Assembly: GCA_904063045.1 (NCBI GenBank)
Contig: CAJFCJ010000007.1
Location: forward strand, 926,819-990,818
Length of the DNA stretch: 64,000 nt
Source of the DNA: Dimorphilus gyrociliatus
Taxonomy: Eukaryota > Animalia > Annelida
Direction: 5' to 3'
This document shows, piece by piece, positions 1,453 through 28,600 of this stretch; the first letter of the stretch is position 1; each line of letters begins with the position of its first letter. Below the pieces are notes generated by a model. The model had not been told where the DNA came from, ran no database searches, and saw nothing but the letters and a program-made list of their open reading frames with translations. The position numbers and the translations under genes were made by a program.

Positions 1453-4400
1453 TCAACGATCCATTTGACGAGCTGAGTACATATCGGCCAACCGCTGGAA
1501 TCTAGGTCCCCATTCTCCCAAATAATCGTAGCAATGTTCGGTTTCGTCTGAAGCAGCTGTTGAGGCTAAGGACGAAAGTGAATCACAAACTGATCCCTCA
1601 CCCTCGTAAGCATACGGCCTAAGGCTGTCGTGTGGGGGAGCTGAGACGTCCTGATCCGCCTCTGCTACTCGAGCACATATAAAATCAGCTACGTCCGCTC
1701 CCGGTGGTGGAACACGTGGCTGTCTTCTCCTTGGAGGATATTCCTCATTCGGTACATCTATACTCTTTGGTTTTTGCATTTTCTTCAAGGGTATACTCTC
1801 TAATGACGGTTTATAAGCGTTTTGATCTTCATCCCCAACACCATCTTCTTCATATCGAATTATATTCTCTCTAACATCGTCGTCTGGATCAACTCCGTGC
1901 ATATATGTTTTACCATTGACATGGTTAGCTTTGTAATTGCGGTGTTTGTACCTAGAATAGACTATAAGGATGAGTATAATCACTAATACGGCTATTGCGA
2001 GAATGCAAAATATAATGCCAAATATTGCACCCGTCGTCATTAAAGAGCTATCCATAAGCTCTTGCCTATTACATTCTTCGCCGGTCCATCCTGGATCGCA
2101 ATCACATTTATAAGACCCTATGGTATTTCGACAAGTACCGTGGAGACCACAAGGTCGGAAGAGTGTTTCGCATTCGTTAATATCCGTACAAGTCGTTACT
2201 GATTCTTGCTTATAGGATTCGTATCCATCTGAACATAAGCACTTTCCAGCCCTCCACAAATCTTTACAATGTAAAGGATCTAAGCACATTAACTTTTTAC
2301 ATCCGTCACTTCTGCAATGATCTTTAATCTCATTTTCCGAAGCAATATATGCGGCGAGGTCACTCATGCTCTCTGAAGTGGTCATCTGGAGAGGTTCTCC
2401 ATCGTATCGAACGTCGTCAATGCAAGAATTTTGCAAATCATATTCAACGATTATTTCAAATTCTCTAGGAAATTTTACCAAACCACCAGCGAAAAAACTC
2501 CCCTGACTCAATAGGATATGAATACGGCCTGAAAAATGACGGTGGACCACGTGAATGTCATCTAAACTGAGCCAGACGTCCCCGGAGTACCGTTCCACTT
2601 TGGCTACATGCCAGACGCCATCTGCGACATCAACATCGTCAATCCTAACATTTTTCTCACCAGATCCAGCATTAAATTTAAATCTCAATCTCCCTCTATC
2701 AATTTCTAAGATTACGTATTGAGACTTGTGGATATTTGATGCCATCCATAAAACTCCTCTTGTGCTTCTTGTGCGGAACCTCAATTGCAGTAATGTGCGT
2801 TCAGTGAAGCGTCGAACAATTGACTCGTAGAATGAATCGGTGAATCGCCATTCGATAAAGCTCTTTTCTCCAAAATCTCTGACCATAGTAGGAGTTTGAC
2901 ACTGATTACCACGCCACCCAGGTTCACATTGGCACTTGAAGCTGCTCTTTATAAAAGATCCAACACATTTTCCATTTTTACCGCAGTAGCCTAGCTCATT
3001 CTCTGCTGTCCTACCGCAAACGGAATCCTCGCGATAGCAACCATCTTCGGCGTTTTCCTGTTTTCCAGTATCTCCAATATAAAGGTCATATAGTTTTCCG
3101 TTGTGCTGAAGCTCCTTGATGCATCCTTTAAATCCGTACTTATAAACCTGGTGCGGATATGAAGGTGTCCTGTGATCTGTAGCTCTTCCTCCTAATTGCA
3201 ACGGTGTATTAACATTTAGCAGTTTCATTGTACCGGGTAGTCGGGCGGATTGTTCGCAAATAGAGTTAACAACTTCGTTATCAAAATCATTTTTTTCACC
3301 AGTTAGCGCACGACAGGAATCAATAATGACCCGGACGAACGGATGCTCTATAAACGTATCTAATCGATGCCAATTTCCGTCATTCAACGTTTTACCATTG
3401 GTGAAATGGATTTTTGCTTCGCCCTGACCAAGGTTAACACGGACTTTTGGAAGCCCATCTACAAGTTCAATAATTACATAATCATTCGGTTCAGCATTTG
3501 ACTGGGTAGGCCCATTGTAAAGCAAGAGACCATCAGGTGAGGTAGTTATAAATTTGAAATTAATGTGAGATTTATCGCATTGTAGAAGAGGGCTGTACCA
3601 TGCGAAAGAAGATTGACCAGAGAAAGAATGAGCAGTCTGTTCACATCTTGGCCCATCAAATCCTTTGGGACACCGACACCTAAATCCTTTAACCTTTTTA
3701 TCGTATGGTTGAACGGGTACACACACTCCTCCATGTAAACAAGTATCGTATTCGCATCCTGTTTTTTCAAAAGATTTCTTGCATGCACAAATTGCTTTTG
3801 TGATGGCGTTTACCCCAATCATAGACGTCGTATTTGTATTGACCAAAAGAGGCCGTTCCTTATCGATTATTATCTTGTTAAAGCAAGCTTCTCCGCCGCA
3901 AACGTTTTCAGAAGAACATTCATCGACCGGAGATTGCAGAATTTTTACATTTAAAGACTTTTCTAAGTGCTCCCGATGTTTGTTGACCAATCCGTTTAAT
4001 TTCACAGGGGAGTACCATGGACTTCCGTGAGCCGCCCAGAAAACGTCAGTAGTACGAAAAAGTTTGTTGTGATTTTTAACACTGAATATTAGAACATTAT
4101 CGAGGGCTGTATTCACGACTGTGGCCAAGCGATGTCTCAGTTTATCATAAAGACTATATTGTCGACTAGAATCGTCCACTTTGTCAATCAATTCTTCGGC
4201 TGTTATTCCAGAGAGACGGATAGAGCCTGCAGAATCGACCGCCTCAATGGGAATATCGAGGATACGCACATGAGCCGTTGAAGTAACGCTTAAGTCCTTT
4301 CTGCGATCTAAAACTTTAACCTTTAACTTATAAAGGCCCTTTCCTAATGACTTTTTTAAGTTCAATTGACCCGTCCTTTTGTTCAGGCTAAATATCAAGA

Positions 4401-7400: not shown

Positions 7401-10400
7401 ATACTGGCGGATTATCGTTCACGTCCAAGGGCCAAACTTGAACCTCAGCGTAACCTGTCAAAGAAGTTGGAGAGCCAGACTCATCGTGAGCTAAAACGTT
7501 GAAACTCCACATTTCTCTTCCTGGTGGTTCTCTATCCAAAGGTTTTGTCAAATACAAATAGCCATTTTTTCGGTCAATTGAGAAATACCCCTCATTAAAA
7601 AATTGACCTGTAATGCCGTACGTAATTTGCCCATAATGTCGACCTCTGTCTGGGTCTGTGGCACGAACCCTACCAATTCGAAGAGGTCTCGATTTTGATG
7701 CTTTAGCATTTTCATAAACATGAGTTATGTTATATAGTAATCTGTCAAATACTGGTGGATTATCGTTTACATCTTCTACTTTAATCTCAATGTGGGTGTT
7801 GCTCATATGTTTGCCGTCAAAAACTCTATATTCTAGTTGATAGAACTCTTTCTTTTCGTAATCTAATGAATTTCTTACTCTGATTTCGCCCGTATGAGAT
7901 ACAACCTCAAAGACATTATTGTCGTTTCCACTCACTATAGAATATGATAGTTCTGGATCAACGTCTCTGTCGTCCGCCGTTACCCTCATAATAGTATGAT
8001 TTGGCTCGACATTCTCTTTAACAACAGCCCTTTCCATTCTCTTTCTAAAGAAAGGAATTTCATCATTCTGATCCGTGATGTGAATAACGACTTCGGCGTC
8101 CACCCTATTTGGAGAATTCATTACTTTAGGCCTATCTGACATTGCTCCATCAAGGGCGGTCACTGTTATATAATACAAATGTTTCGTTTCTCTATCGAAA
8201 GTGTCTTTTGTTGTTATTAATCCAGTTTTTGTATCTATGTCAAATAAATGTACATCTTGGTGTAAGTTATAGATAGGCTTCTTTAATGCGTAAGTGATCT
8301 CTTTGAATGCTGGAGTTGAATCACGATCGGTTGCAGTTACACTGATAACGGGAGTGCCTGGTTTCGAATTTTCGGCTACAGATCCTTGATACCGTCCATT
8401 TTCATCTAAGCCTATGAATTGAGGGATTTCATCGTTCTTATCACGAACATGTATCTCTATTCTGGTAACATTACGCAACGCATGAGTTGCTTTGTTTACA
8501 GCTCGAACTGTGAGTGTATACTTCGGTACTGTTTCATAATCTAATGCTTTATACGTTAAGATCTCTATAGCATTTTGCGTATCATCTGGTCGAGAGAAAA
8601 AACTTCGAGGGTTATTTGTTTCTGGAGAAACTCCTTCCTCCAAGGTGTAACTGACCAGAGTATTTTGGCTTCCGGAAGTTGCCTTTAACGTGCATACTAG
8701 ATGATTTTGTTCGACGTTTTCATCAACGTAAAATTTACCGCTGATGGAATCCTCATTCCATTGCGGATATGTATTCTCACCAGACCGAATGATTTGGATT
8801 GATACTCTAGCAGTGGAACTTCTCTGTTCTTTGCCTTTATCTTCAGCAACAACTGTAATATTTTCGTATTGCCCTGGTATTCCTATAATTGGTTCTTTCA
8901 AGGTTATCCATCCCGTTTGAATGTTGACACGGAAGTATCTAGAGTGCGACTTCAATAAATATCGCACTCGGCCGTTTTCATTAGCATCCTTGTCAGTTGC
9001 ATGCACTTGTATGATCTTTGATCCAACTCGCCTACTCTGATCAATCGTTGCTTCATACCTTGGCATATCGAAAACGGGCTCATGGTCATTAATATCATCA
9101 ATTCTTACGCGGAATGTACAAAATCCAGCTAAACTTGGTTTACCCTTATCGACAGCCTTAACGGTAACACCTAAATCATATACTCCAGTCTGTTGTTCTC
9201 TATCAAAAATCTCCTCTGTTTTTAACGTACCAGTTATCGAATCTATAGAAAATTGAGCATTTTTTGTACTTTTTACAATGGAATATGTCACTTCGCCATT
9301 TTCTTCCCAGTCCTTATCCGTAGCCTTTACTTGAAATACAGTTGTTCCAACTTTACTATGTTCTTTCACAGAAGGCCTATATTGAGAGCACTGTTCAAAT
9401 TTTGGAGCATTATTATTAACATCCTTAAACTTGATTTTGACTATTCCATAAGATGTCAATCGGCGTCCACCTTTACAGCATGATCCATCATCTGTCGCCG
9501 ATACATTTAGCGTATATTCGTTTCGGCTTCGTTCAGCTAAAGGCTTCTCCAGAGTAATTTTGCCACTATTTTTATCAAGTTTAAACAAGCCATCGTAAGA
9601 ATATAGAGAAGTTTGTCCGGCGAATCCAAATGTTATGTTATCACCATCTGGATCGTAAGCTTGAATGACGTGTATATCAGTGTAGGGTGGGGTATCTTCA
9701 TTCACTTGAACTGTTTCGACCCTCTGCGAAAATTTATTGCATCGATTACTAAAGTGAATAATAGATGACGACCACCGCCTATGAAGGAGGTTACATAATT
9801 ATTATTCGTTGCACGAATCGACAAAATTTTCTCCAAACAAAACTAATCAGAGCATAAATTTCGCCTATCGATTTCCATCGCGTCGTCGAGATGTTTATTT
9901 TCGTGAAAAATTGGAACGGCCTCCGAGATAAACTAGTATTTATGGGCTACAGGCTGTTTGCACACTACACTATCTTTTAGTTTGTTGATTTGGCGAAGGC
10001 TAGTGGAAAAATAATTCTCTTCAAATGTTCACCAATCAACCTTTTAATGCATTTAGCTTTTTACGCTCAGTAAAAAAACCTTTATCAGTGTTCAGCTGAG
10101 CGAAATGTCACAAAACAAAAATAATGTTAAAACAGGTAATGCGATCGGAGTTTGCAAAAGAAAATTCTAGCACTTTGTGTAATCTTTCATCAGAGTTGCT
10201 ACAACAATATTTACCAGTACATTAGACATCAGTTGCCTAGCTTTTAATATTTCTCAGATGAATCTGTATGTTTTCCAGTTTGTAGTACCGACACTCGTGT
10301 CTATCTGCTTTTATAAGATCTACCTTTCTTAAATCAGCATTAATCACAATTTATAGTACAGGTGCATATTATAATCTGCTTTTATTTTTATAACTACTTT

Positions 10401-17710: not shown

Positions 17711-20700
17711 TTATCCGGATTTCGTTTGATGTAGAGCCTGTATAATATATATACATATATAAAAAGTTTTAGTAATAGATTTATAAGACATAAAAAAACT
17801 ATAAATTTACCAAATGTATATTTAAAATACAATAAAATTAGAAATGTGCTTGCTTAAAAGAGAGTGTTAACTTTCACTCATTAACAATATATGGAAACTA
17901 TCATAATAAATAATTGCTGAATAATAAAAAAAAATAATGAAAATAGTAGATGAAAGATTTTCTATCTTTATATTTATGATTAAGAAAATAGGCCAATTAA
18001 AATATCTATATTCTATATAAATAGTAATTAACTTTTGTAAGAGAAAAAAGGAAATTTCTTTTTTTTATATGTTGAACGGATTTGATTGATTTTTTTTTAT
18101 ATATATATATTTAGGTGTAAAAAACCTATTAATTTTATATTTTAATATGATAAATAATTGAATAGATGGAGAAAACTTTATCAGAAAAATATATTATAAA
18201 AATAGAATAGTTATACAAACCGTTGTAATATCGACACCAGTCATAGATTTAATAACTTTGGGTAACTTTTCTACAATATCTATAACTTCTTCAGTCAGTT
18301 TGGATGCGCCCACTTCGCTGTTTCCGCTGGAAACCATAACTACTTTTTTGGTTTTTGTCAGCGGTTGCGCAATTTCTTCAGCAACTTTTGGCAGCGTTTC
18401 AAGCATCATCTCCACAAGAGCAGCATCCTTGTATTCTTTCCAAGCTTCCGCTTTCTTCGCCATCTGCTCAGCTTCCGCCTTAGCTTTTACCTGTATAGCG
18501 TAAGCTTTTGCTTCACCCTTTATTCTAATCGATTCGGACTGGGCCTGTGCTTCGAGTACAACTCTACTCTTATTAGCAGAGGCAATTTTCTCTAGACGAT
18601 ATCTTTCGGCTTCGGCAGGCTTTCTAACTGTGGCGTCTAATTCTCTCTCCCGTCTTATAATTTCCTGTTCTTGAACGTGAATCTCTCGATCTCTTTCAAT
18701 AACCTCGACCTGTTTATTTTCCTCTCTACATTTGATAAAAAGAGGATTATTGTAATAACGCTAAAAGCTTTATAGGAGATTAAACTTACCTGATTAGTTG
18801 TTTTGTTTTAGCAGCTTGAAGACTATAGCTTAATTCAGATTTAGCTTTCTTTCCTTGAATTTCCATATCATATTCAGCATTTTTAATCTTAAAGTCCCTT
18901 TCCGCCTTAGCAATGTCGATATCATTCTTATAGCGAGCAGCCATTTTTAGTTCGTTTGCTTCTGCTTCCTGTTTTCGAGTAATATTTATATTTAATAACG
19001 AGTTTTACATGGAAGCGTAAAGAACAGATAGGAGAAAAACGGTTTCCAAATGATTTTAGGTATAAATTATTGCGTAGCATTAGGCTTTGGGAATCATACA
19101 AATAAAATCAAGAGTTGTTGAGTTGTCCAATCATTTATTTTTAACTACTTAAAAACAAGTTTTTTAATATTTACACGAAATCTATCCACTTAATTATTTA
19201 CACACACATCTAGAAGCTCGTAGTGATAAACAATTCTGTTGCTTAATATCTAATTATTGCTTCAAATGTTGTACGGTATCAGGAACACTTTATTATAAAC
19301 TATATGCGTACAAGGGGAGACTATTCATATTATATTAATTAAAAAGTATTTAAGAAATACAAGATATTTCTTTATAATCGTGATTTTTAGAATACAAGCG
19401 TGGAAAAAATCCCAGAGAAAATATTATATCTTCATTACATTAGTCATTAAAACAGCTGCGTCGGCAAGTGTTTTTCTGATACACAATTAGCAAAGTACCA
19501 ACACGATTAAATATTCATAGTTACTTTAATATAACTATCTCAATAGGTGCTGGCAATGGGATCTATTTTATGGAAAATAGAAACCTTCTTTTTTAAGGAA
19601 GTAAATTACATTCACAGCTATTTCTCTCTTACAGATAGGAAAATGCCTTCAATCCTTACAATTAATAAATATATTGACTAGTTAATAACAAATAACAGCA
19701 TCTTATAACTAATATCATTTTCTCGCTTTTCCGGAGCAAAACACTTTTCCTTACAGGAAATTCATTCAGAGGAATAATCCAATTAGAATGAATGACATTG
19801 ACTACAGGCGAGAGAGTACTATTGACTAAGAAAATTCTTTCTAAGCCTATTGGTCATCAGAATCACTTATCAAGGCAATATATTTACTAGGTGATACTAT
19901 TACAAATTGTATAATCAATTTGGATATGTCAGAGCTTGTTTTTAAAAATTGAAAGAAATCAAATATTAATTGTTATTGGCAAAAAAACCGGATAAGATAC
20001 AAGTAATTATACTTAATTAGATAAAAAGAACATTCGATATATTATTTTAAGACTAAGACTATAATCTTAAGATTTGTTTGTTATATTTTTTACTTATCAA
20101 AGATTGGTATGTCGCATGTAGTACTCACTGTATACAGTATACTCAAGCACTAATCTAAAGATAATAGGATAGTTTTCTTTTCTTAATAATATAATCAAAT
20201 TTAATTAGTTCTATACAAGACTGGTAATTTGCACCGTTTTATCTACTAACAGACAATTTTGTAAATCTTATTAAAATTTAGTTTAGTTTTCTTTTACAAT
20301 GTCAGCTGGCTGTCATTCACTTTAAACAGCGTTTCAATCAAGTATTCTGTGTGCTGCTGGTCAACATATCTTAAAAAATAGAACTCCTTATTAAGTGTAG
20401 TGATTGACGCTGAAAACTATTCTAAACAAGAAGTTACTAAATAACTGAAAAATACATTTTGTTTTCAACTCAACACTCTGTAATAGTAATATATCTTATT
20501 TCCATTCATTTAGCATTGTAAGCTTAGTTTTGAATGGTCGTTTTTTATTGATGATGGCGTAAACAGATTCTTAAGCTCTGTAAAATTCTATTTCTAATTT
20601 GTGTCATTCCATTGACCAGGCTAATGATAACTTTGTTAACTAAGTACAGTAATAAGATTAATTGGGATTAATGAAATATTTATATACTCTCTATATAAAA

Positions 20701-22952
20701 TACTTTTACAGCGATTTTCAAAGATTAAATTTAGTTTAAAACATTATTTTTACTAATATGTCACCTTAATTGTGGCATCTCTAAGAGCTTCAGCTTCACC
20801 GATTTTAGCGTCACGTTTAACTTGAGCCGTCCTGGCCTGACCCAAGGCTTTCAAGTAGCCCTAAGAAGCAAGAAAAAACACAAAAATTTTATACAACAAA
20901 TCTAGGCAAATCAAAAAAGCAATAGTATAGCAAAAAAAAAATAAAACGTATGGTGGTGGACTTAATTTTAAGGAAAAAAAACTAGACTTTAATGGCAGCG
21001 TCCCTCCTCGAAATAGCTTCCCCTATTAAAGCATCTCTTTTAACTTCAGCTGTTCTTTTCTTTCCTAAACTTTCGATATAGCCCTGTATAGTTTTGCTAA
21101 AATCTTAAAAAATGCATTTATTATATAATTTATAAATTTTAAATGATGTTTATAGTTTATCGTTAGATTTCTTTGCTAAGAATAAAACATTAATTAAGAA
21201 TAACAAAATTCTATGAGAAAAAAAATAATTCAACATTAAACGTATAGATAATATTACCTCGTCGTCTCGAATATCTTTGATAGTGTAACTGACAACCATA
21301 ATTCCCATTTGGATCAGATCGGACGAGGCTTCATCGAATACTGATTTCGAAAACTTTTTTCTGTCCTTGTATATTTCCTAGAATGAGGGGGAAAACGAAG
21401 ATTTCATTAATATTAAATCTTCCTGTTGGACAGAAAAGGCGGAAAATGAAGTCCCTAATAGATGAAAATTTGCTCTAGATATAATTTACAAAATGACTGT
21501 AATCTATCATCTATTAGAAACAATGTTTTAACTACTTGCAGGAGAATTTACAAAGCAAAAATAATGAATGAAAAAAAATTTAGAAGCTGGCTGACACACC
21601 TCCACTGTCATGTTACCCATAATTGCTCTTTGATGACCTTCCAGGGTTTCTTGGGAGATTGAAGCAACTTCTCTTTCAGATTTTCCAAGAAAGTGTTGGC
21701 AGGCTGCCTCTAACATGTCTCTGTTACTTCCCTGAATTTTTACCTGAAATATTTTGGATGCAGTAGACAAAAAAAGACAGCTATAACTAAAGAAGGGTGG
21801 AATTGAACACGAACGACGGAAAACAACAAATTTGTCGAGCAATTGGCACCTTGACCGACATATTTCCCATTATAGCTCGTTGATGTCCTTCAAGAGTTTC
21901 TTGGGCTATTTTTCTAATTTCAACATCAGGTTTGCCAAGAAATAGCTGGCAAGCAGTTGCTAGCATGTCACGATTTTGACTGTGAATCTTGACCTTAATT
22001 AGTGCCAATTATTTAATATAACAATTGCCGATATTTTTGTTGTAGAGTGTAGTTCAGCGTAATAATAATTAAAATTAGTTTAAAGATAGTATACAGTATA
22101 TACCTGAGCAATGCCCGTAACTGATACGGCAACGCCATGTTGTGTGTAAACTTGAGGCGATTCAATCGTCAGAGTCATGGTATTCAGGGATATTCTGTGG
22201 ATGAATGATGTTCATTAGTTATAATTCAAGTTTACAGCTTTTATTGTATTTATAGTATATAGTAATTTCTTTAATAAAGATCTTGTTGGTATTATAGTCT
22301 AATTAAAAACAAAGTATGTGCATAGCATAGCAAAATTCTTATCAGTGGGAAAATATTAGTAGTAGCTTTAAGTTAGAGATTTGGAAAATATGAATCATAA
22401 TATCGAATTTAGAGTTTGCAAGAGAATTTTACCTCTGAATCTGTTGTATTATCGGCCAAACGAAGACTCTCCCTCCTGGCACCAATTGGGGTCGATCTAG
22501 GCAGCATCCTCCTGTACAAATTAGAAAAATTGTTCGTTAGATTGTTTTGGTCGAATTTCAATTTAAAAAAGCCTCTTTATTGTACCCGATTTCACCAAAA
22601 CTTCGTTAGGACCACTAGAATGACAACACATACATTGGCCCATTTTTGCAAATAGTATTGATAAGCAATGAACCCTTTATGTTTAATGTAACCTCGGTTA
22701 AGAAAATAAGTATTGAAATGATAACAGAATAGTCTGGTTGTGAAACGGATTACTCCATATAAGCTGAAAACCTGTTTATATATTGTTTGATGGGCAGCAT
22801 GATAAGAAAACAGGTATTTTAACAGTTTATCTTGAAGAAACCGATAATACTATCGCGCCGCCATGTTGTTTAAATATTTGAGCATTTTTAGACGATTTCC
22901 TACCTGAAACTACCATTGCTTCATTGGGACCGCAGACATGGAAAAGAGGCAT
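17711..22952 (-). CDS. FLOT1: Flotillin-1 (SPFH + flotillin domain), about 430 aa, with three duplicated exon pairs
   Basis: Exons: 1a 22952-22904 or 1b 22643-22586; 22511-22433; 22194-22104; 4a 21993-21850 or 4b 21743-21600; 21377-21258; 6a 21083-20988 or 6b 20860-20765; 18968-18790; 18725-18221; 17737-17711. FLOT1-diagnostic motifs: [47 protein letters not shown]. Confidence 0.93.
20765..20860 (-). CDS. FLOT1: Flotillin exon 6b ([32 protein letters not shown]), 96 nt
   Basis: cttag|GGC...AAG|gtgaca; phase 0-0; paralogous to exon 6a. Confidence 0.88.
20988..21083 (-). CDS. FLOT1: Flotillin exon 6a ([32 protein letters not shown]), 96 nt
   Basis: tacag|GGC...AAA|gtctag; same length and phase as 6b; open frame; weak donor. 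Confidence 0.8.
21600..21743 (-). CDS. FLOT1: Flotillin exon 4b ([48 protein letters not shown]), 144 nt
   Basis: ttcag|GTA...GAG|gtgtgt; phase 0-0; visible within ORF 21528..21842. Confidence 0.88.
21850..21993 (-). CDS. FLOT1: Flotillin exon 4a ([48 protein letters not shown]), 144 nt
   Basis: ttaag|GTC...AAG|gtgcca; same length and phase as 4b; visible within ORF 21787..22008. Confidence 0.85.
22586..22643 (-). CDS. FLOT1: Flotillin alternative first exon 1b ([20 protein letters not shown])
   Basis: ATG at 22643; ends TCG G|gtacaa (phase 1), which joins exon 2 in frame; GPNE motif conserved. Confidence 0.78.
22857..22868 (-). promoter_or_regulatory. YY1-like motif CAACATGGCGGC between flotillin exons 1a and 1b (candidate internal promoter)
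   Basis: Near match to the YY1 consensus CAARATGGCGGC, in a CpG-rich patch about 215 nt upstream of the exon 1b ATG. Confidence 0.45.
22904..22952 (-). CDS. FLOT1: Flotillin alternative first exon 1a ([17 protein letters not shown])
   Basis: ATG at 22952; ends TCA G|gtagga (phase 1); matches the canonical FLOT1 N-terminus [11 protein letters not shown]. Confidence 0.88.
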
Positions 22953-23845
22953 CTTATTGTAGGTTAATGATATCTTGTTTAAGAGATGATTTATAAATAT
23001 GTAATATTTGGGAAAAATTTAGTAAGGAAAGGGGTCAAGGACAGTTTGCGTCATCTAGTGGGCAAAAAATTTCAGAATAAATTTGCTCCATATTCCATAC
23101 TTATACGCCATCTGTATCAATGAATACTATAGCAGCTTAGTAGCAGGGAGAGAGAAAGAGAGAAAGGTAAAGAAAAATCGAAGAATAAGAAGTAAGAATA
23201 TTTAGAAAACATTTTCGCTGTATTCTCTAAAATATATCAGAACAACATCTGGTAAAACAATATACTACAGAAACGACACAACTTATACTGAGCAAAATTT
23301 TCCATTTTTTTTCCCTACCCCAAGCTTTCTCAAAAAATTGTTCTTATTGAGTTCTATTTACTTTTTTTGCCCTGTAATTGTTATTTTATTCCCCTATTTT
23401 CTCCCCTCTCCCTTCCAACAAGAAAAAAACATTTCATTTTCACAGCAAAAAACGTGCCAAAATGTATAATAACTATTTGACATAATTTTACCATTATTCT
23501 ATCCTTTTTCCGAAACAAACAAGTTCCTCTTCTCCTTCAAATCCTACTTTTGTTTATTCATTATGAAAAATTTATGAAAAAATATAAATCTTTTATTTAT
23601 ATTTTATATTTTTTTAAAAAAAAAAATAATAAAAAATAAGATTTTGATTTATTGTTTTTGTTTATTAACTTCATTATTATTATTATTATTATTTAGCTGT
23701 AAATAACAAGTTATTTTCCCTTTTCTTTTCCGAATAGGAAAATTGAACGGAAGGATAAAAAAATGGTAAAAAAATCGAAAATAGTAAGCCGATACCATCC
23801 CTACCCTGAGGGGGACTTTAAAACGATTTCTCTTTTCTTTTATTT

Positions 23846-25594
23846 TTAAAGTAAATCCGTAACATTGTTCTTCGAACCGAACACTTTAGCTAATTGCTCT
23901 TCATAGGCTGCTGCATTTCTCTTCATAATATCCTTGCAGGGTCCCAATAACCGCGTAAAATCGTCTCTTGGTAATTTTGCCACCCTAGTCGATCCGACTG
24001 CGATGACCGTTGCTGCTCGAGGTTGGTCAGTGATAAGAGCTAATTCTGTTGATAGAAATTCAGGAATCGTAAAAAGCTTTCCACACGAAATTGAAAGTGA
24101 TTTGAGTATTTAAATAAAACTGTTTTAAATCATCTTAACTATTTAATCAGAATAAAAATAGTACGTTTTATATCTTTCTTATAGTGAGACGTTAATGACA
24201 ATGTAAACACAAGTAAATCTATTAACTATAAATAGTATAAACTACATACCTCCAAAATAGCCTCCCGGTTGCACCCTGCTAACTTCTTTCTGTTCCGCTT
24301 GATGCTATTAAAGAAAGAGTATTTCCTTTTATAATGCGAAGATTGGAAGAAAGAGAAACCTCTTAAAAAACTTACAGCCTGCTTAACCAGGCACCTGACG
24401 GCGCCCTTTTCAACGAAGTACATAGAATCCGCCTCATCATCCTGTTTTATAATCACTTCACCATCTAAATAATCTTTACTTTGTAATGCGTAAGCCACGT
24501 TATTTCGTTCATAAAGCGTCAATTCCTGGAAGAGAGGAACCTTTTGCAGAAGATCTTCATACTGCTTTAATTTTAAATGAGTAGATTTGATAACTATCCT
24601 TCTAAATGTTTGTCTGTCCATAGCCCATAGCTTGCCAGCGGTTTTTGATAGAATACAAACTGCCCTGGGAGTATTATACATCAAGGCTAATTCTCCAAAA
24701 AAACCTTCATTATCATAAATCTTTGGAGGTTCTGTTTCTTTAAATTCACCATTCTCTTCACTTAACCGAAAAGCAGCAAAGACCCCCTTTTCCACAACAT
24801 ACATATAGTCGCCGTCGTCATCCTCTTTAATTATAACTTCTTCGGGACCTTCGACAACCTTTTCAAACATAGCATCAATAAGCTGTTCCATTTGCTCTGT
24901 ATCTAAATGTCTGAAGTAGAAGCAGTTTTGAAGCGTCGCCTTAAGACGTTGTCGTTGAGAATCAGTTTTTGGATAGACTGTCAAAGGCGTCTCATCCGTA
25001 TCAGTTTCGGGGTCATAGCGTTCGGCAGCAACTGATTTACGTCGACCTACTGTTCTAGCTGGACCTAAAAAGAGAGATAAAAACGAATGTGAGTAGGAGG
25101 AGGAACAAAGCATTTTAACAAAAAAAAAATTGAAAAGAAAAAAGGGTAGAAGGAAAGAAAAGAACTAGAACGTTGAACTTTCTAATTGAGGTTGCAGGCG
25201 TTACTTATTCTTTGTTATACTTATATATGCTTTTGGCACGTTTTTTTCAATAGCGAAGGGCTACAAAAACTCGGATATTTAGAACGGACTTTAATAGCGA
25301 TACTTAAACAACCCTTAATGTAATTCATATACTATACTAAAACTAGGTTTAGAATTTCTAATTACAACATCAACTACATAATGAAGTTTGCTTTATACAA
25401 TCTTTCTCTTTATAATATTTTATGCGGCTCATATTCTAATTCAACTTTAAAAGAAATATATTCATTAAGAAATCTCCGCCTTCATATTCTATAAATAAGT
25501 TAATTACTGCTCATTACAAAATAACATATATACATATTTCTATATGCTGAGCTAAGCGAAAATAGATGTTTTCCAAAATGTTTACAAATAAATT

Positions 25595-25628
<34 letters not shown>

Positions 25629-28600
25629 CTGTATATACTTAATTAATTTTATTTATATATTTCTATTTACCTCTATAAATACCAAAAAACAGTATACAGG
25701 ATTATCTTTGATATATCCCACATAAATAGTATATAAGAGGGATAAAAATTAACTATCACCCTCAGTTTCTTACTCCCCCTCAACGCCATAAATATACGCT
25801 GTATGCAAATTGTATATAAATATAGGCTTACATTGTCTTCCTGAACTCTACTGCTAAAACGGTGTATAAAATTTCAATCCGTATTACTGGAATTACAGCC
25901 GCAAATAGACTTGCAGTTTTTTTTTTATTTTATTTTTTACTTCTTGCGCCTTTCGAAATTCACCTTTCATGTTGAAGGATTTTCGTATTTTAATCCTCTT
26001 GAAAGAAATGTAGTAAGTAAGACTTGTCTCGAGGATACAGAAAAATTGGGACAATTTTCAAACTTGTCCTTCCTGCCGTAAAACTCCCTTACAGCTCAAT
26101 CTACCTTCATTTCCGTTCCTATTTATAGGTAATGAAAAACGTCCAATGGTATATACGAAAAAAAAAGAGCGTCACCTACTCAATGCCGACGTCACTTCGA
26201 ACCGAAAAAAACGTACGTGCGACATATAATAATGAAAGAGTATATCTTCCACATCTTCCAATCAATATATACATAGGTACTCATGTAGACGAACGTATCA
26301 TTCATAAATTTATTCAAGTTCAACTTTGATAGCAATATTTTAAAGGTTATGGGCTTATTATTCGCTGCTTTTGTTCGACAATTGTTCGATATATCTAAGC
26401 AATAGCTTACCGTTCTCACCATTTACTATATTATAATCGGTCCGTCGGCGCTGTCTCATAAAAGCGCCTAAAATAGTTGCCGCTACGGTGCTTATACAAT
26501 CCGCAACCGACGCCATCTTCTACAGTAATTAGTCGCGATTTTCAACCAGGAGAGAATATTGCAGATGCGTGTACAAACGTCGACATCTATCGATTCGACA
26601 GAAACGCTCGCAGCGTCACCTCGTATCGTATAAACGAGGTTTACGGGCATGCATGAGAGATATTGGGTGGCTTTTGATCAGTAAAAAAACAGTATTACCT
26701 GTATAGCCTTTTATTCTACCTATTTTGTCAGATGTCTACAAATTATTGAATAGGATGCGCTACATTTGCTACAAGCATGCAATGTATTTAATATTAGGTT
26801 ATAAATATTTATAGTTACATATAATAAACTATTGTACTGTGATATAAAGTCTATAAACTGTAAATGAAGAAAATATGTATATTCTAGTTTGCACCAGTGT
26901 TACCAACTACGTTTGTCACGATATGCAGCTGGAAAAATTCTAAAATTAAGCACGTATCCCTTCAAGATGCAACTAATTCCATAGTCTTGGCCTATCTTGC
27001 ATACTCGAATGAGCGATACTGGTAAAGATAAGTGCATAGATGAATTATAATAATTTTATGAATATTGTATCTCTTTTAGCACCCAACTAAAGCAAACAGT
27101 TATTAGATCTATAGTAAAAAAAAGACTGGAAATTATATAGATCAATTTTTCTCCCTCTTCTCTTCTTTATTCCCTCGATTTCTTTTTCTAAAATTGTGCT
27201 TTTTAATAAGACAAAAAGTTCCGTCGATCATTAAATTGCTCTCTTAGTAGATTGACAGCTTTAAATTTTTTAACAAAAATATATTAGCCTCTTTTTATAT
27301 GCGTTAAAACATTGCAGATTGTCTCAATTAGAGAATTATCACGTGATGTGGGCAGTAATTTACATCAAAGTCTGATTTGACCTTTTTTATCAGATGAATT
27401 TCACGCAGACAACCTGTTAAATCACGATTGTAGGTGTCGCTATCTTAGAAGTTTAAGAAGCTCTGTAGATTTTCTGTATTGCCCATAAAAGGTCAAGCTG
27501 AACTCGAATGTCTATAAACCATGAATGTTGTCGATACTACAAACTAGAGAAGTTGACAATTTGTCACGTTTTTAAAAAAAACCTGACAAACACATTTGAA
27601 GTAAAGAAAAAAAAAAGACTACTCATGATTAACTTCAAACTGTGATTTTTTTTTCTAAAATATAAATACAGCTATAAGACAAAAAGGATGGTAGTAATTA
27701 GATTAAATTACGTAATATTACATAATTAGAGAGTATGAATAAAGTACATTTTTTTGTAAAATTGAAAGGCATCATAATAGAAATACCCATTTACTATTAT
27801 ATTTAATTAAACTATCATTTATAGAAAAATAGAGGAGTAGGAGGAGTAGGGATTAGAGGGAAGGGTTAGAAGACTGGCAGAGTTGTGTGAAAAGAGGACA
27901 GAAAATATCCAATTAATAAAATTAATAATATGCTTTTTTTATTAAAAAAATAAATATTAAATACTTTCTTTGCATACAAAGCTAAATTTTATACTTTGAA
28001 TATGAAAGTTTACAAAATAAATAACAATACTATAATGTTTCATTGTTAATTCCCATTTTCAAATCAATAGATTTTAATATTTTTAAAATCAGTCAGGTTA
28101 CTTTGTTTTTCTTAAATTATTAATCACAATTGTAATGAGAAGTCATGAAATTTCTAACAATTTCCTTACTTGTGCATTTTGTATCCATTTATTAGACTAG
28201 ATCCAGTCTTCGCTGCGTATTTATCTTATAGGCCTTATGTCGCCTTCTGCATGCTGATTTTATATTGATCACTGCTAAAACCTTATTATTTATCCAACCG
28301 TACTAACAATTGGATTAGTAAGAATAGATTAAATATCTAAAGCTAGTGGCCTTTCTTATTCGTACGTGATAATATACGTACTGTATTTATAAAAAATACG
28401 GTATTTTTTAGCATACTATAAGATCTACATGCAAATCTATTATTTGAATATAAACTAAATACCGAAAATGGTATAGACAGTATGTTGATAAATACTAATA
28501 CTTTATAATTCATGTTTAATCTTGACAAAAAATTTATTTTGAGTGTTGAAGCATGTTTCTTTCTTCTTATCCTGCCCTTTTATAACGGGATAATAAGCTA

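Follow-up and report, generated by a model that had tools for sequence, protein, structure and literature searches.

Introduction

The human 44-mer cage of flotillin-1 (FLOT1) and flotillin-2 (FLOT2) provides the closest solved structures (PDB 9BQ2 and 9L3G) for the gene described here. FLOT1/FLOT2 alternation is dictated by oppositely charged patches on SPFH2, tyrosine 160 lies in the hinge between SPFH2 and the wall helix (CC1) and is a Fyn site that may switch assembly, and myristoylation of FLOT2 at Gly2 together with cysteine palmitoylation keeps the cage on the membrane (PMC11260169, PMC13000311). Tandem exon duplication with alternative use of the copies is already known, as are alternative first exons, Dscam, 14-3-3 zeta and ion channels representing the mutually exclusive exon class; for flotillin-1 no such paper was found, a full-text literature search returning nothing relevant on mutually exclusive exons, or on tandem duplication of exons, in connection with flotillin. 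We have analysed a flotillin-1 gene of the annelid Dimorphilus gyrociliatus, located at 17711–22952 on the minus strand of a stretch of 64,000 nucleotides (nt) of contig CAJFCJ010000007.1 (positions 926,819 to 990,818; hereafter the window), in which alternative first exons and two mutually exclusive exon pairs probably diversify one flotillin-1 at three points.

Domain order, length and the hinge tyrosine, which is encoded in both exon 6a and exon 6b, are shared between the worm gene and animal flotillin-1 (reggie-2), including the subunit of the human cage. The worm protein is unlike known FLOT1 in that exon 2 carries a GCC motif, the Cys34-type site is absent (VWPIIQQ) and the optional first exon, 1b, provides a flotillin-2-like start. 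No paper was found that reports mutually exclusive pairs for flotillin-1 of vertebrates or insects, and each exon is present once at the cockroach locus, whereas the worm has pairs. Exon 1b resembles the anchor of flotillin-2 (reggie-1) in beginning with Met-Gly and containing three cysteines within seven residues, and the GCC of exon 2 resembles SGGCCG. However, the match to the flotillin-2 anchor comprises 9–10 of 20 residues, the remaining protein is FLOT1, and lipidation of the 1b product is a prediction for an exon unseen in RNA.

With respect to the mutually exclusive exon class, the worm pairs are likewise adjacent, equal in length and phase, equipped with their own splice sites and under purifying selection in both copies, with one copy serving as the default. 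They differ from that class in that neither the frame nor too short an intron compels exclusive use, no conserved docking/selector pairing was found and productive inclusion of the minor copies is presumptive. The exchanged segments fall where recent cage structures place the assembly rules, on the surface of SPFH2, at the hinge tyrosine and where the wall helix begins, and would constitute natural, minimally different subunit variants with which membrane anchoring, hinge behaviour and neighbour choice can be tested. If the reading proposed here is correct, one gene builds differing cage subunits.

Gene structure and identity

Exons were called by translating the minus strand between 17600 and 23100 in three frames and checking the flanks for splice sites. 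A single flotillin-1 gene was observed, consisting of twelve exon bodies in the order 1a, 1b, 2, 3, 4a, 4b, 5, 6a, 6b, 7, 8, 9, all on the minus strand and separated by introns that are all GT..AG. The coding part of exon 1a (22952–22904) contains the canonical flotillin-1 start, while the alternative first exon 1b (22643–22586) encodes Gly2 and three cysteines; each opens with ATG and closes with a phase-1 donor. No AG acceptor precedes exon 1b, which is therefore usable only as a first exon with its own transcription start. The constant exons are 2 (22511–22433), which begins with GGCC, 3 (22194–22104), 5 (21377–21258) and 7 (18968–18790), the last two defined by splice sites and RNA, and exon 8 (18725–18221), which encodes the Flot C-terminal domain. 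The coding part of exon 9 (17737–17711) specifies ALHQTKSG followed by the stop codon TAA.

The two internal pairs consist of adjacent exons of equal length in phase 0. Exons 4a (21993–21850) and 4b (21743–21600) are each 144 nt in length and are identical at 98 of 144 nt (68%) and at 33 of 48 amino acids (aa; 69%). Exon 4a, the more diverged SPFH2 version, has an acceptor without a pyrimidine tract and a weak donor, GTGCCA, while 4b is the conservative version. Exons 6a (21083–20988) and 6b (20860–20765), each 96 nt, are identical at 59 of 96 nt (61%) and at 21 of 32 aa (66%); 6a encodes the hinge tyrosine and the beginning of the wall helix and ends at a weak donor, GTCTAG, and 6b is again the conservative version. 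All eight combinations of the alternative exons yield an open frame, of 429 or 432 aa, and no further exon copies were detected when every exon peptide was searched by tblastn against the whole window. An earlier note, made from the sequence alone, had reported this exon order with its coordinates, phases and lengths, had counted up to eight possible isoforms and had described one gene in place of a tandem gene duplication; translation, splice-site inspection and the exon anatomy bear out each of these points.

The identity of the gene is clear. The public locus on CAJFCJ010000007.1 matches the window exactly, as its reverse complement. Exon 8 encodes a peptide that matches DgyrCDS5824 of D. 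gyrociliatus at 100% identity, the best named matches for the locus are mollusc flotillin-1 proteins, and a comparison of exon 8 with 1.8 billion representative sequences returned flotillins only. Pfam domains precomputed on the public coding sequences (CDS) are PF01145 (Band_7) at the N-terminus and PF15975 (Flot) at the C-terminus; SPFH/Band_7 is thus followed by the flotillin C-terminal coiled-coil domain, and in alignment the exons cover carp FLOT1 from end to end. The locus is the single flotillin-1 orthologue of D. gyrociliatus. A profile for full-length search, constructed from carp FLOT1 and the window exons, was set aside; MAFFT scattered the short exons and the alignment was not used.

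Selection on the alternative exons in a related worm

A relative was represented by the Logan contig L001 (run SRR23372228 and three sister runs), in which the flotillin gene adjoins the same 397-aa cadherin neighbour as in Dimorphilus. Eleven exons, 1a, 1b, 2, 3, 4a, 4b, 5, 6a, 6b, 7 and 8, occur in L001 in the order observed in Dimorphilus, and exon 9 was also found, encoding ALQQSKSG and a stop. Between the species a pairs with a and b with b, 4a being 85% identical to its counterpart vs 62–67% between 4a and 4b, and 6b being 97% identical to 6b. All splice sites are kept in L001, including the weak ones, namely, for 4a, an acceptor poor in pyrimidines and the GTGCCA donor and, for 6a, the donor (GTCTAG in Dimorphilus, GTCGAG in the relative).

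Synonymous differences between Dimorphilus and L001 approach saturation, with proportions of 0.52–0.83 and a synonymous divergence (dS) >1. In the six alternative exons the proportion of synonymous differences (pS) is 0.58–0.73, that of nonsynonymous differences (pN) is 0.03–0.09 and omega, the ratio of nonsynonymous to synonymous divergence, is 0.02–0.09, values within the range of the constant exons. For exon 1a, pN is 0.03 and omega 0.02, with 15 of 16 aa kept in the relative; for 1b the values are 0.09 and 0.04 (pS 0.73; 17 of 19 aa kept). Values of pN and omega are 0.09 and 0.08 for 4a, 0.08 and 0.04 for 4b, 0.09 and 0.07 for 6a, and 0.03 and 0.02 for 6b, in which 31 of 32 aa are kept. 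Low omega at near-saturated synonymous sites indicates that all six alternative exons are maintained as protein-coding sequence. The b copies are conservative, lying nearer than the a copies to their counterparts (exons 4 and 6) in snail, slug, cockroach and carp; the a copies evolve two to three times faster than b, yet under strong purifying selection.

These results bear on the possibility that a single member of each pair is functional, the additional copy being either a dead duplicate or an artefact of assembly or haplotypes. In its favour, the b exons alone would explain the bulk message and exon 1b was unseen in RNA. However, the copies are only 61–68% identical in DNA, much too diverged for haplotype collapse, and a second species contains the same six exons, intact with splice sites, with a-to-a and b-to-b orthology and under the constraint described above; dS >1 excludes L001 being the same species with sequencing noise. 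In addition, RNA contigs show the acceptor of 6a in use and contain 4a lacking the intron that precedes it. Haplotype collapse, misassembly, chance and dead duplicates are thus excluded as sources of the pairs, including the local misassembly and haplotype collapse that the earlier note had itself raised, and that only one member of each pair functions is an exceedingly improbable explanation.

Splice forms in RNA

RNA was available as assembled contigs, in which presence is informative and absence is not, rare variants being dropped and distant exons being unphased. The contigs derive from three runs of three studies, a coral metatranscriptome (X1), a marine metatranscriptome (X2) and a run without recorded kind but rich in spliced joints (X3). 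One 710-nt contig of X1 reads 2-3-4b-5-6b-7 unbroken. In X3 the joints 2-3, 3-4b, 4b-5, 5-6b, 6b-7 and 7-8 are observed at contig depths of ~2000–3100; 2-3 and 3-4b were detected in all three runs and 4b-5, 5-6b and 6b-7 in both X1 and X3. The 8-9 joint is supplied by a contig of X2, in which 18220/1 is joined to 17736/7, and its frame was checked. Joint 1a-2, on a 1965-nt X3 contig of mean depth 344 that extends upstream past 23300, is the sole joint found upstream of exon 2. The abundant message is therefore 1a (at least in part)-4b-6b, a form which mixes a and b letters, and neither an a-a-a nor a b-b-b pattern is visible in the X1–X3 contigs.

The a versions of the internal exons are also present in RNA, at roughly a tenth of the contig depth of the main message in bulk RNA. 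Joint 5-6a is observed in X3 at a depth of 278, the contig then continuing unspliced through the 127-nt intron into 6b, and after 6a an in-frame stop comes at once, the first intron codons being GTC TAG. Exon 4a lies on an X3 contig (21797–21995, depth 291) that starts exactly at the acceptor and runs 53 nt into the downstream intron. As calculated from bin depths, there is no other coverage of the intron before 4a or of the 56 nt before 4b, indicating that RNA contains 4a freed of the intron upstream. Introns elsewhere in the gene are also covered, at depths of 30–76. Joints 4a-4b, 6a-6b, 3-5 and 5-7 are not listed in the X1–X3 contigs, in which rare forms are dropped.

Splice choice and conserved intron sequence

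Docking/selector pairing was searched by window-by-window duplex folding of all introns of both clusters, in both species and with shuffle controls. Only the flanks of 4a in Dimorphilus stand out, with a predicted duplex of −34.7 kcal/mol (z −4.6, 0 of 300 shuffles as good) that includes 9 nt across the donor; the relative shows a z of 0.0, and the fold of the 360-nt region is no better than that of shuffles (z −1.0). No pairing was conserved in both species, and docking/selector RNA pairing was rejected as an established mechanism. The sequence around 4a is an inverted repeat (21994–22040 and 21810–21849) in which AATTGGCAC upstream of the acceptor can pair with GTGCCAATT at the donor, a second arm lengthening the duplex; it was found in Dimorphilus and is absent from the relative.

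The partially spliced contigs would also be produced if the a exons were regulated unproductive cassettes, intron retention and a premature stop lowering output or giving an SPFH-only protein. The X3 contig that passes from 5-6a unspliced into 6b, meeting GTC TAG at once, and the 4a contig that reads through its donor are consistent with such regulation, as are the weakness of both a donors in both species and the duplex across the 4a donor in Dimorphilus. Against this, the amino acids of 4a and 6a are under strong purifying selection (pN 0.09 vs pS 0.6), which is needless for a poison cassette. Moreover, the relative, with GTC GAG, does not share the stop behind 6a, the duplex is equally unconserved and the region as a whole is not unusually folded, and unspliced intermediates are expected in total RNA, in which other introns of this gene are also covered. 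Unproductive use of the a exons is for these reasons considered unlikely.

The most economical reading of exon choice is competition between the strong splice sites of the b exons and the weak splice sites of the a exons, which would be shifted by cell-specific factors. The b versions are the default found in the bulk message and the a versions are included at a low level, their use being most likely confined to particular cells, stages or sexes.

Several observations weigh against productive and mutually exclusive use of the alternative exons. No 4a-5 or 6a-7 joint is listed in the X1–X3 contigs, so that productive a-containing messages are putative, and exon 1b has zero depth in X1, X2 and X3. 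Neither frame nor anatomy enforces exclusivity: 144 and 96 are multiples of three, so that inclusion or omission of both twins stays in frame, and the introns separating the twins, 106 nt (4a/4b) and 127 nt (6a/6b), are long enough for splicing, another intron of the gene measuring only 64 nt. The contigs themselves prove neither exclusivity nor an absence of coordination. Finally, the public N-terminal CDS (Band_7, 226 aa, 22178–20753) has a length which fits only if 4a and 4b as well as 6a and 6b are all strung together. Our rebuild of this CDS gives 228 aa, the 6-nt difference fitting an alternative GT six bases inside 4a. A CDS containing both twins of both pairs is most simply a prediction error.

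Intron sequence is also retained between the two worms, comprising ~35 nt before 4b, 19 nt before 6a and the first 13 nt after 6a, with several conserved blocks also present within the 1.8-kb intron after 6b. One of these non-coding blocks (19835..19897, minus strand) includes 38 nt identical between the worms and is a possible part of the system. Blocks at 19765–19921 and 19414–19511 on the minus strand of the same intron are conserved despite the saturation of synonymous sites. The 6b-7 intron block contains TGATAAG, which is GATA-like, and CCAAT, and might act as an enhancer or internal promoter or give rise to a novel RNA. An Rfam scan of the gene returned only a sub-threshold chance match, the conserved intron blocks corresponding to no known RNA family.

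Flotillin type of the alternative products

The earlier note had proposed that the variable exons cover the lipid-anchor N-terminus, the SPFH domain and the start of the coiled coil, and that coordinated choice among them could yield two paralog-like subunits. Alignment confirms the positions of the exons; the paralog-like subunits are not borne out. Exon peptides were aligned to flotillin-1 of carp, cockroach and lobster and to five flotillin-2 proteins, including those of Capitella, Owenia and Helobdella. The constant exons 2, 3, 5, 7 and 8 are plainly of the FLOT1 type, exon 8 matching carp FLOT1 at 96 of 170 residues (56%) vs 71–77 of 170 (42–45%) for the five FLOT2 proteins. Both members of the exon 4 pair are also of the FLOT1 type: 4a and 4b match carp FLOT1 at 29 and 33 of 48 residues, respectively, vs 17–25 of 48 for FLOT2, and both carry the FLOT1 motif EGHQRAIMG, not the FLOT2 form EGHLRAILG. 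A FLOT2-type SPFH core, exemplified by EGHLRAILG and a Trp-rich GGWAWAW loop, was not found in these exons. The short exons 6a and 6b resemble FLOT1 and FLOT2 to about the same extent, and neither encodes the FLOT2 sequence DIGVAEA. Exon 1b alone leans to FLOT2, and only through Met-Gly and the cysteines of its predicted start, MGQCMCC, which is likewise MGQCMCC in the relative.

Constant FLOT1 sequence accounts for 278 of ~430 residues and the isoforms differ among themselves at no more than ~40 of 430 positions. Human FLOT1 and FLOT2 are ~48% identical (PMC13000311). The worm isoforms are thus far closer to each other than are the human proteins, indicating that the locus does not supply one subunit of the FLOT1 kind and another of the FLOT2 kind. 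As judged from their sequences, all products are flotillin-1 subunits and not a FLOT1/FLOT2-like pair.

The suggestion that coordinated a-a-a versus b-b-b choice provides both subunits of the hetero-oligomer, replacing or supplementing flotillin-2, has some appeal, as the variable exons lie in the subunit-contact regions of the structure papers (the charged patches of SPFH2 and the SPFH2-CC1 hinge), exon 1b has a flotillin-2-like MG/Cys start and no Dimorphilus flotillin-2 appears among the best 120 matches of the FLOT2 searches, in which four other annelids, Capitella, Owenia, Helobdella and Enchytraeus, are present. However, these matches stop at 75% identity and a length window that excludes short or split models, so that the missing Dimorphilus FLOT2 proves nothing; equally uninformative is the lack of any mention of flotillin-2 found in the supplements of the Dimorphilus genome paper. 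In addition to the FLOT1 character of both a and b versions, the abundant RNA joins 4b to 6b and the only first-exon joint comes from 1a, 1b being unseen. Substitution for FLOT2 is also at odds with gastropods, in which flotillin-1 has the exon-6 pair while other gastropods have an ordinary flotillin-2. Production of both hetero-oligomer partners from this locus is consequently very improbable.

Placement of the exchanged segments in the cage

The preferred reading, diversification of a single flotillin-1 at three points, can be related to the cage structures by alignment. Exon 4 lies within SPFH2 as defined by alignment to vertebrate FLOT1, and choice between 4a and 4b would exchange 48 residues of this domain. 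Exon 6 starts at the equivalent of human D159-Y160 and runs into CC1; both 6a and 6b begin with Gly-Tyr, and the 6a/6b choice would exchange 32 residues, from the hinge tyrosine (equivalent to human Y160) to the initial turns of the wall helix. At the N-terminus, two first exons, which have separate start codons and presumably separate promoters, would provide either the ordinary flotillin-1 N-terminus, from 1a, or the MGQCMCC start of 1b. By analogy with flotillin-2, the 1b product is predicted to be N-myristoylated and multiply palmitoylated. The resulting proteins would differ in membrane anchoring and in the surfaces that touch neighbouring subunits of the flotillin cage, and it may reasonably be supposed that anchoring, hinge behaviour and contacts between neighbours are tuned at the three variable sites. 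No difference in net charge between a and b versions is conserved between both worms.

Exon pairs in other species

Comparison of the locus in molluscs, suggested in the earlier note, revealed the exon-6 pair in gastropods, where exon 4 is single, unlike the worm gene. In Biomphalaria glabrata the exon-6 pair occupies the same position, both copies being 96 nt with AG/GT splice sites, the diverged copy upstream and the canonical copy downstream. Elysia marginata also contains the pair, as 96-nt copies with splice sites. Bulinus truncatus and Elysia crispata are represented by protein models, of 493 and 459 aa, respectively, that hold both exon-6 copies in tandem, which is the same modelling error as in Dimorphilus. 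Single copies, and no exon pairs, were found in flotillin-1 of the cockroach Blattella and in two compact metagenome eukaryotes (L005 and L012). The exon 4 and exon 1 pairs have so far been seen only in the two dinophilid-like worms.

Dimorphilus 6a matches the upstream snail copy at 25 of 32 residues and the downstream copy at 20 of 32. The exon-6 tree is unresolved on 32 columns, on which one old spiralian duplication and repeated duplication are not separable. In B. glabrata, exon 3 is duplicated (locus L009, 4399–4488 and 5160–5249), with 90 coding bases and AG/GT splice sites in each copy; both are 83% identical to the worm exon and form a candidate exclusive pair which the worm does not have.

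Met-Gly starts were also observed on other flotillin-1-type proteins. In the nearly intronless metagenome eukaryote L005 the protein has an MGNCC start, close to 1b, as its sole N-terminus (9182–9240, MGNCCFTTGPNEVMVKSGCC), and gastropod flotillin-1 starts with MGFETCG (MGFETCGPNEVMVVSGCC). A Met-Gly start on a FLOT1-type protein is thus not unique to 1b.

Combined, old and conserved spiralian exon swapping at the SPFH2 surface and hinge and a myristoylatable dinophilid N-terminus might permit FLOT1-only or isoform-alternating cages free of FLOT2, in a Dimorphilus whose own FLOT2 is lost or diverged; we regard this extension as quite improbable.

Public gene models and additional transcripts

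The public annotation of CAJFCJ010000007.1 divides the gene into two CDS. Besides the N-terminal CDS discussed above, a C-terminal CDS of 228 aa (18194–18944 of the window) contains part of exon 7 and exon 8 and reads through the exon 8 donor to an intronic stop (VCITILFL followed by the stop), leaving exon 9 unused. The public flotillin-1 models of Dimorphilus and several snails are thus wrong, being split or having twin exons strung together. Two 3′ ends are possible for the worm gene: exon 9 is spliced in the X2 contig, while a contig of X3 breaks off precisely at 18220, the donor of exon 8, as though spliced and read-through forms parted at that point of the assembly graph (17711–17737 vs 18194–18221).

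At the opposite end of the gene, the X3 contig carrying the 1a-2 joint reaches ~1.5 kb further upstream, toward a cNMP-binding gene at 23846–26516 on the same strand. The extension, over 22903–23300 and beyond, might represent a long 5′ untranslated region, read-through or the artificial joining of two transcripts during assembly. A further contig of X3 terminates at 23166, where its sequence ceases to match at an AG|GT of the plus strand. A contig of X1 touches AT-rich sequence at ~18186–18203 and then continues as GGGGTTTT repeats, of the spirotrich-ciliate telomere type; it is most likely a chance AT-rich match to ciliate sequence of that sample, outside the worm gene.

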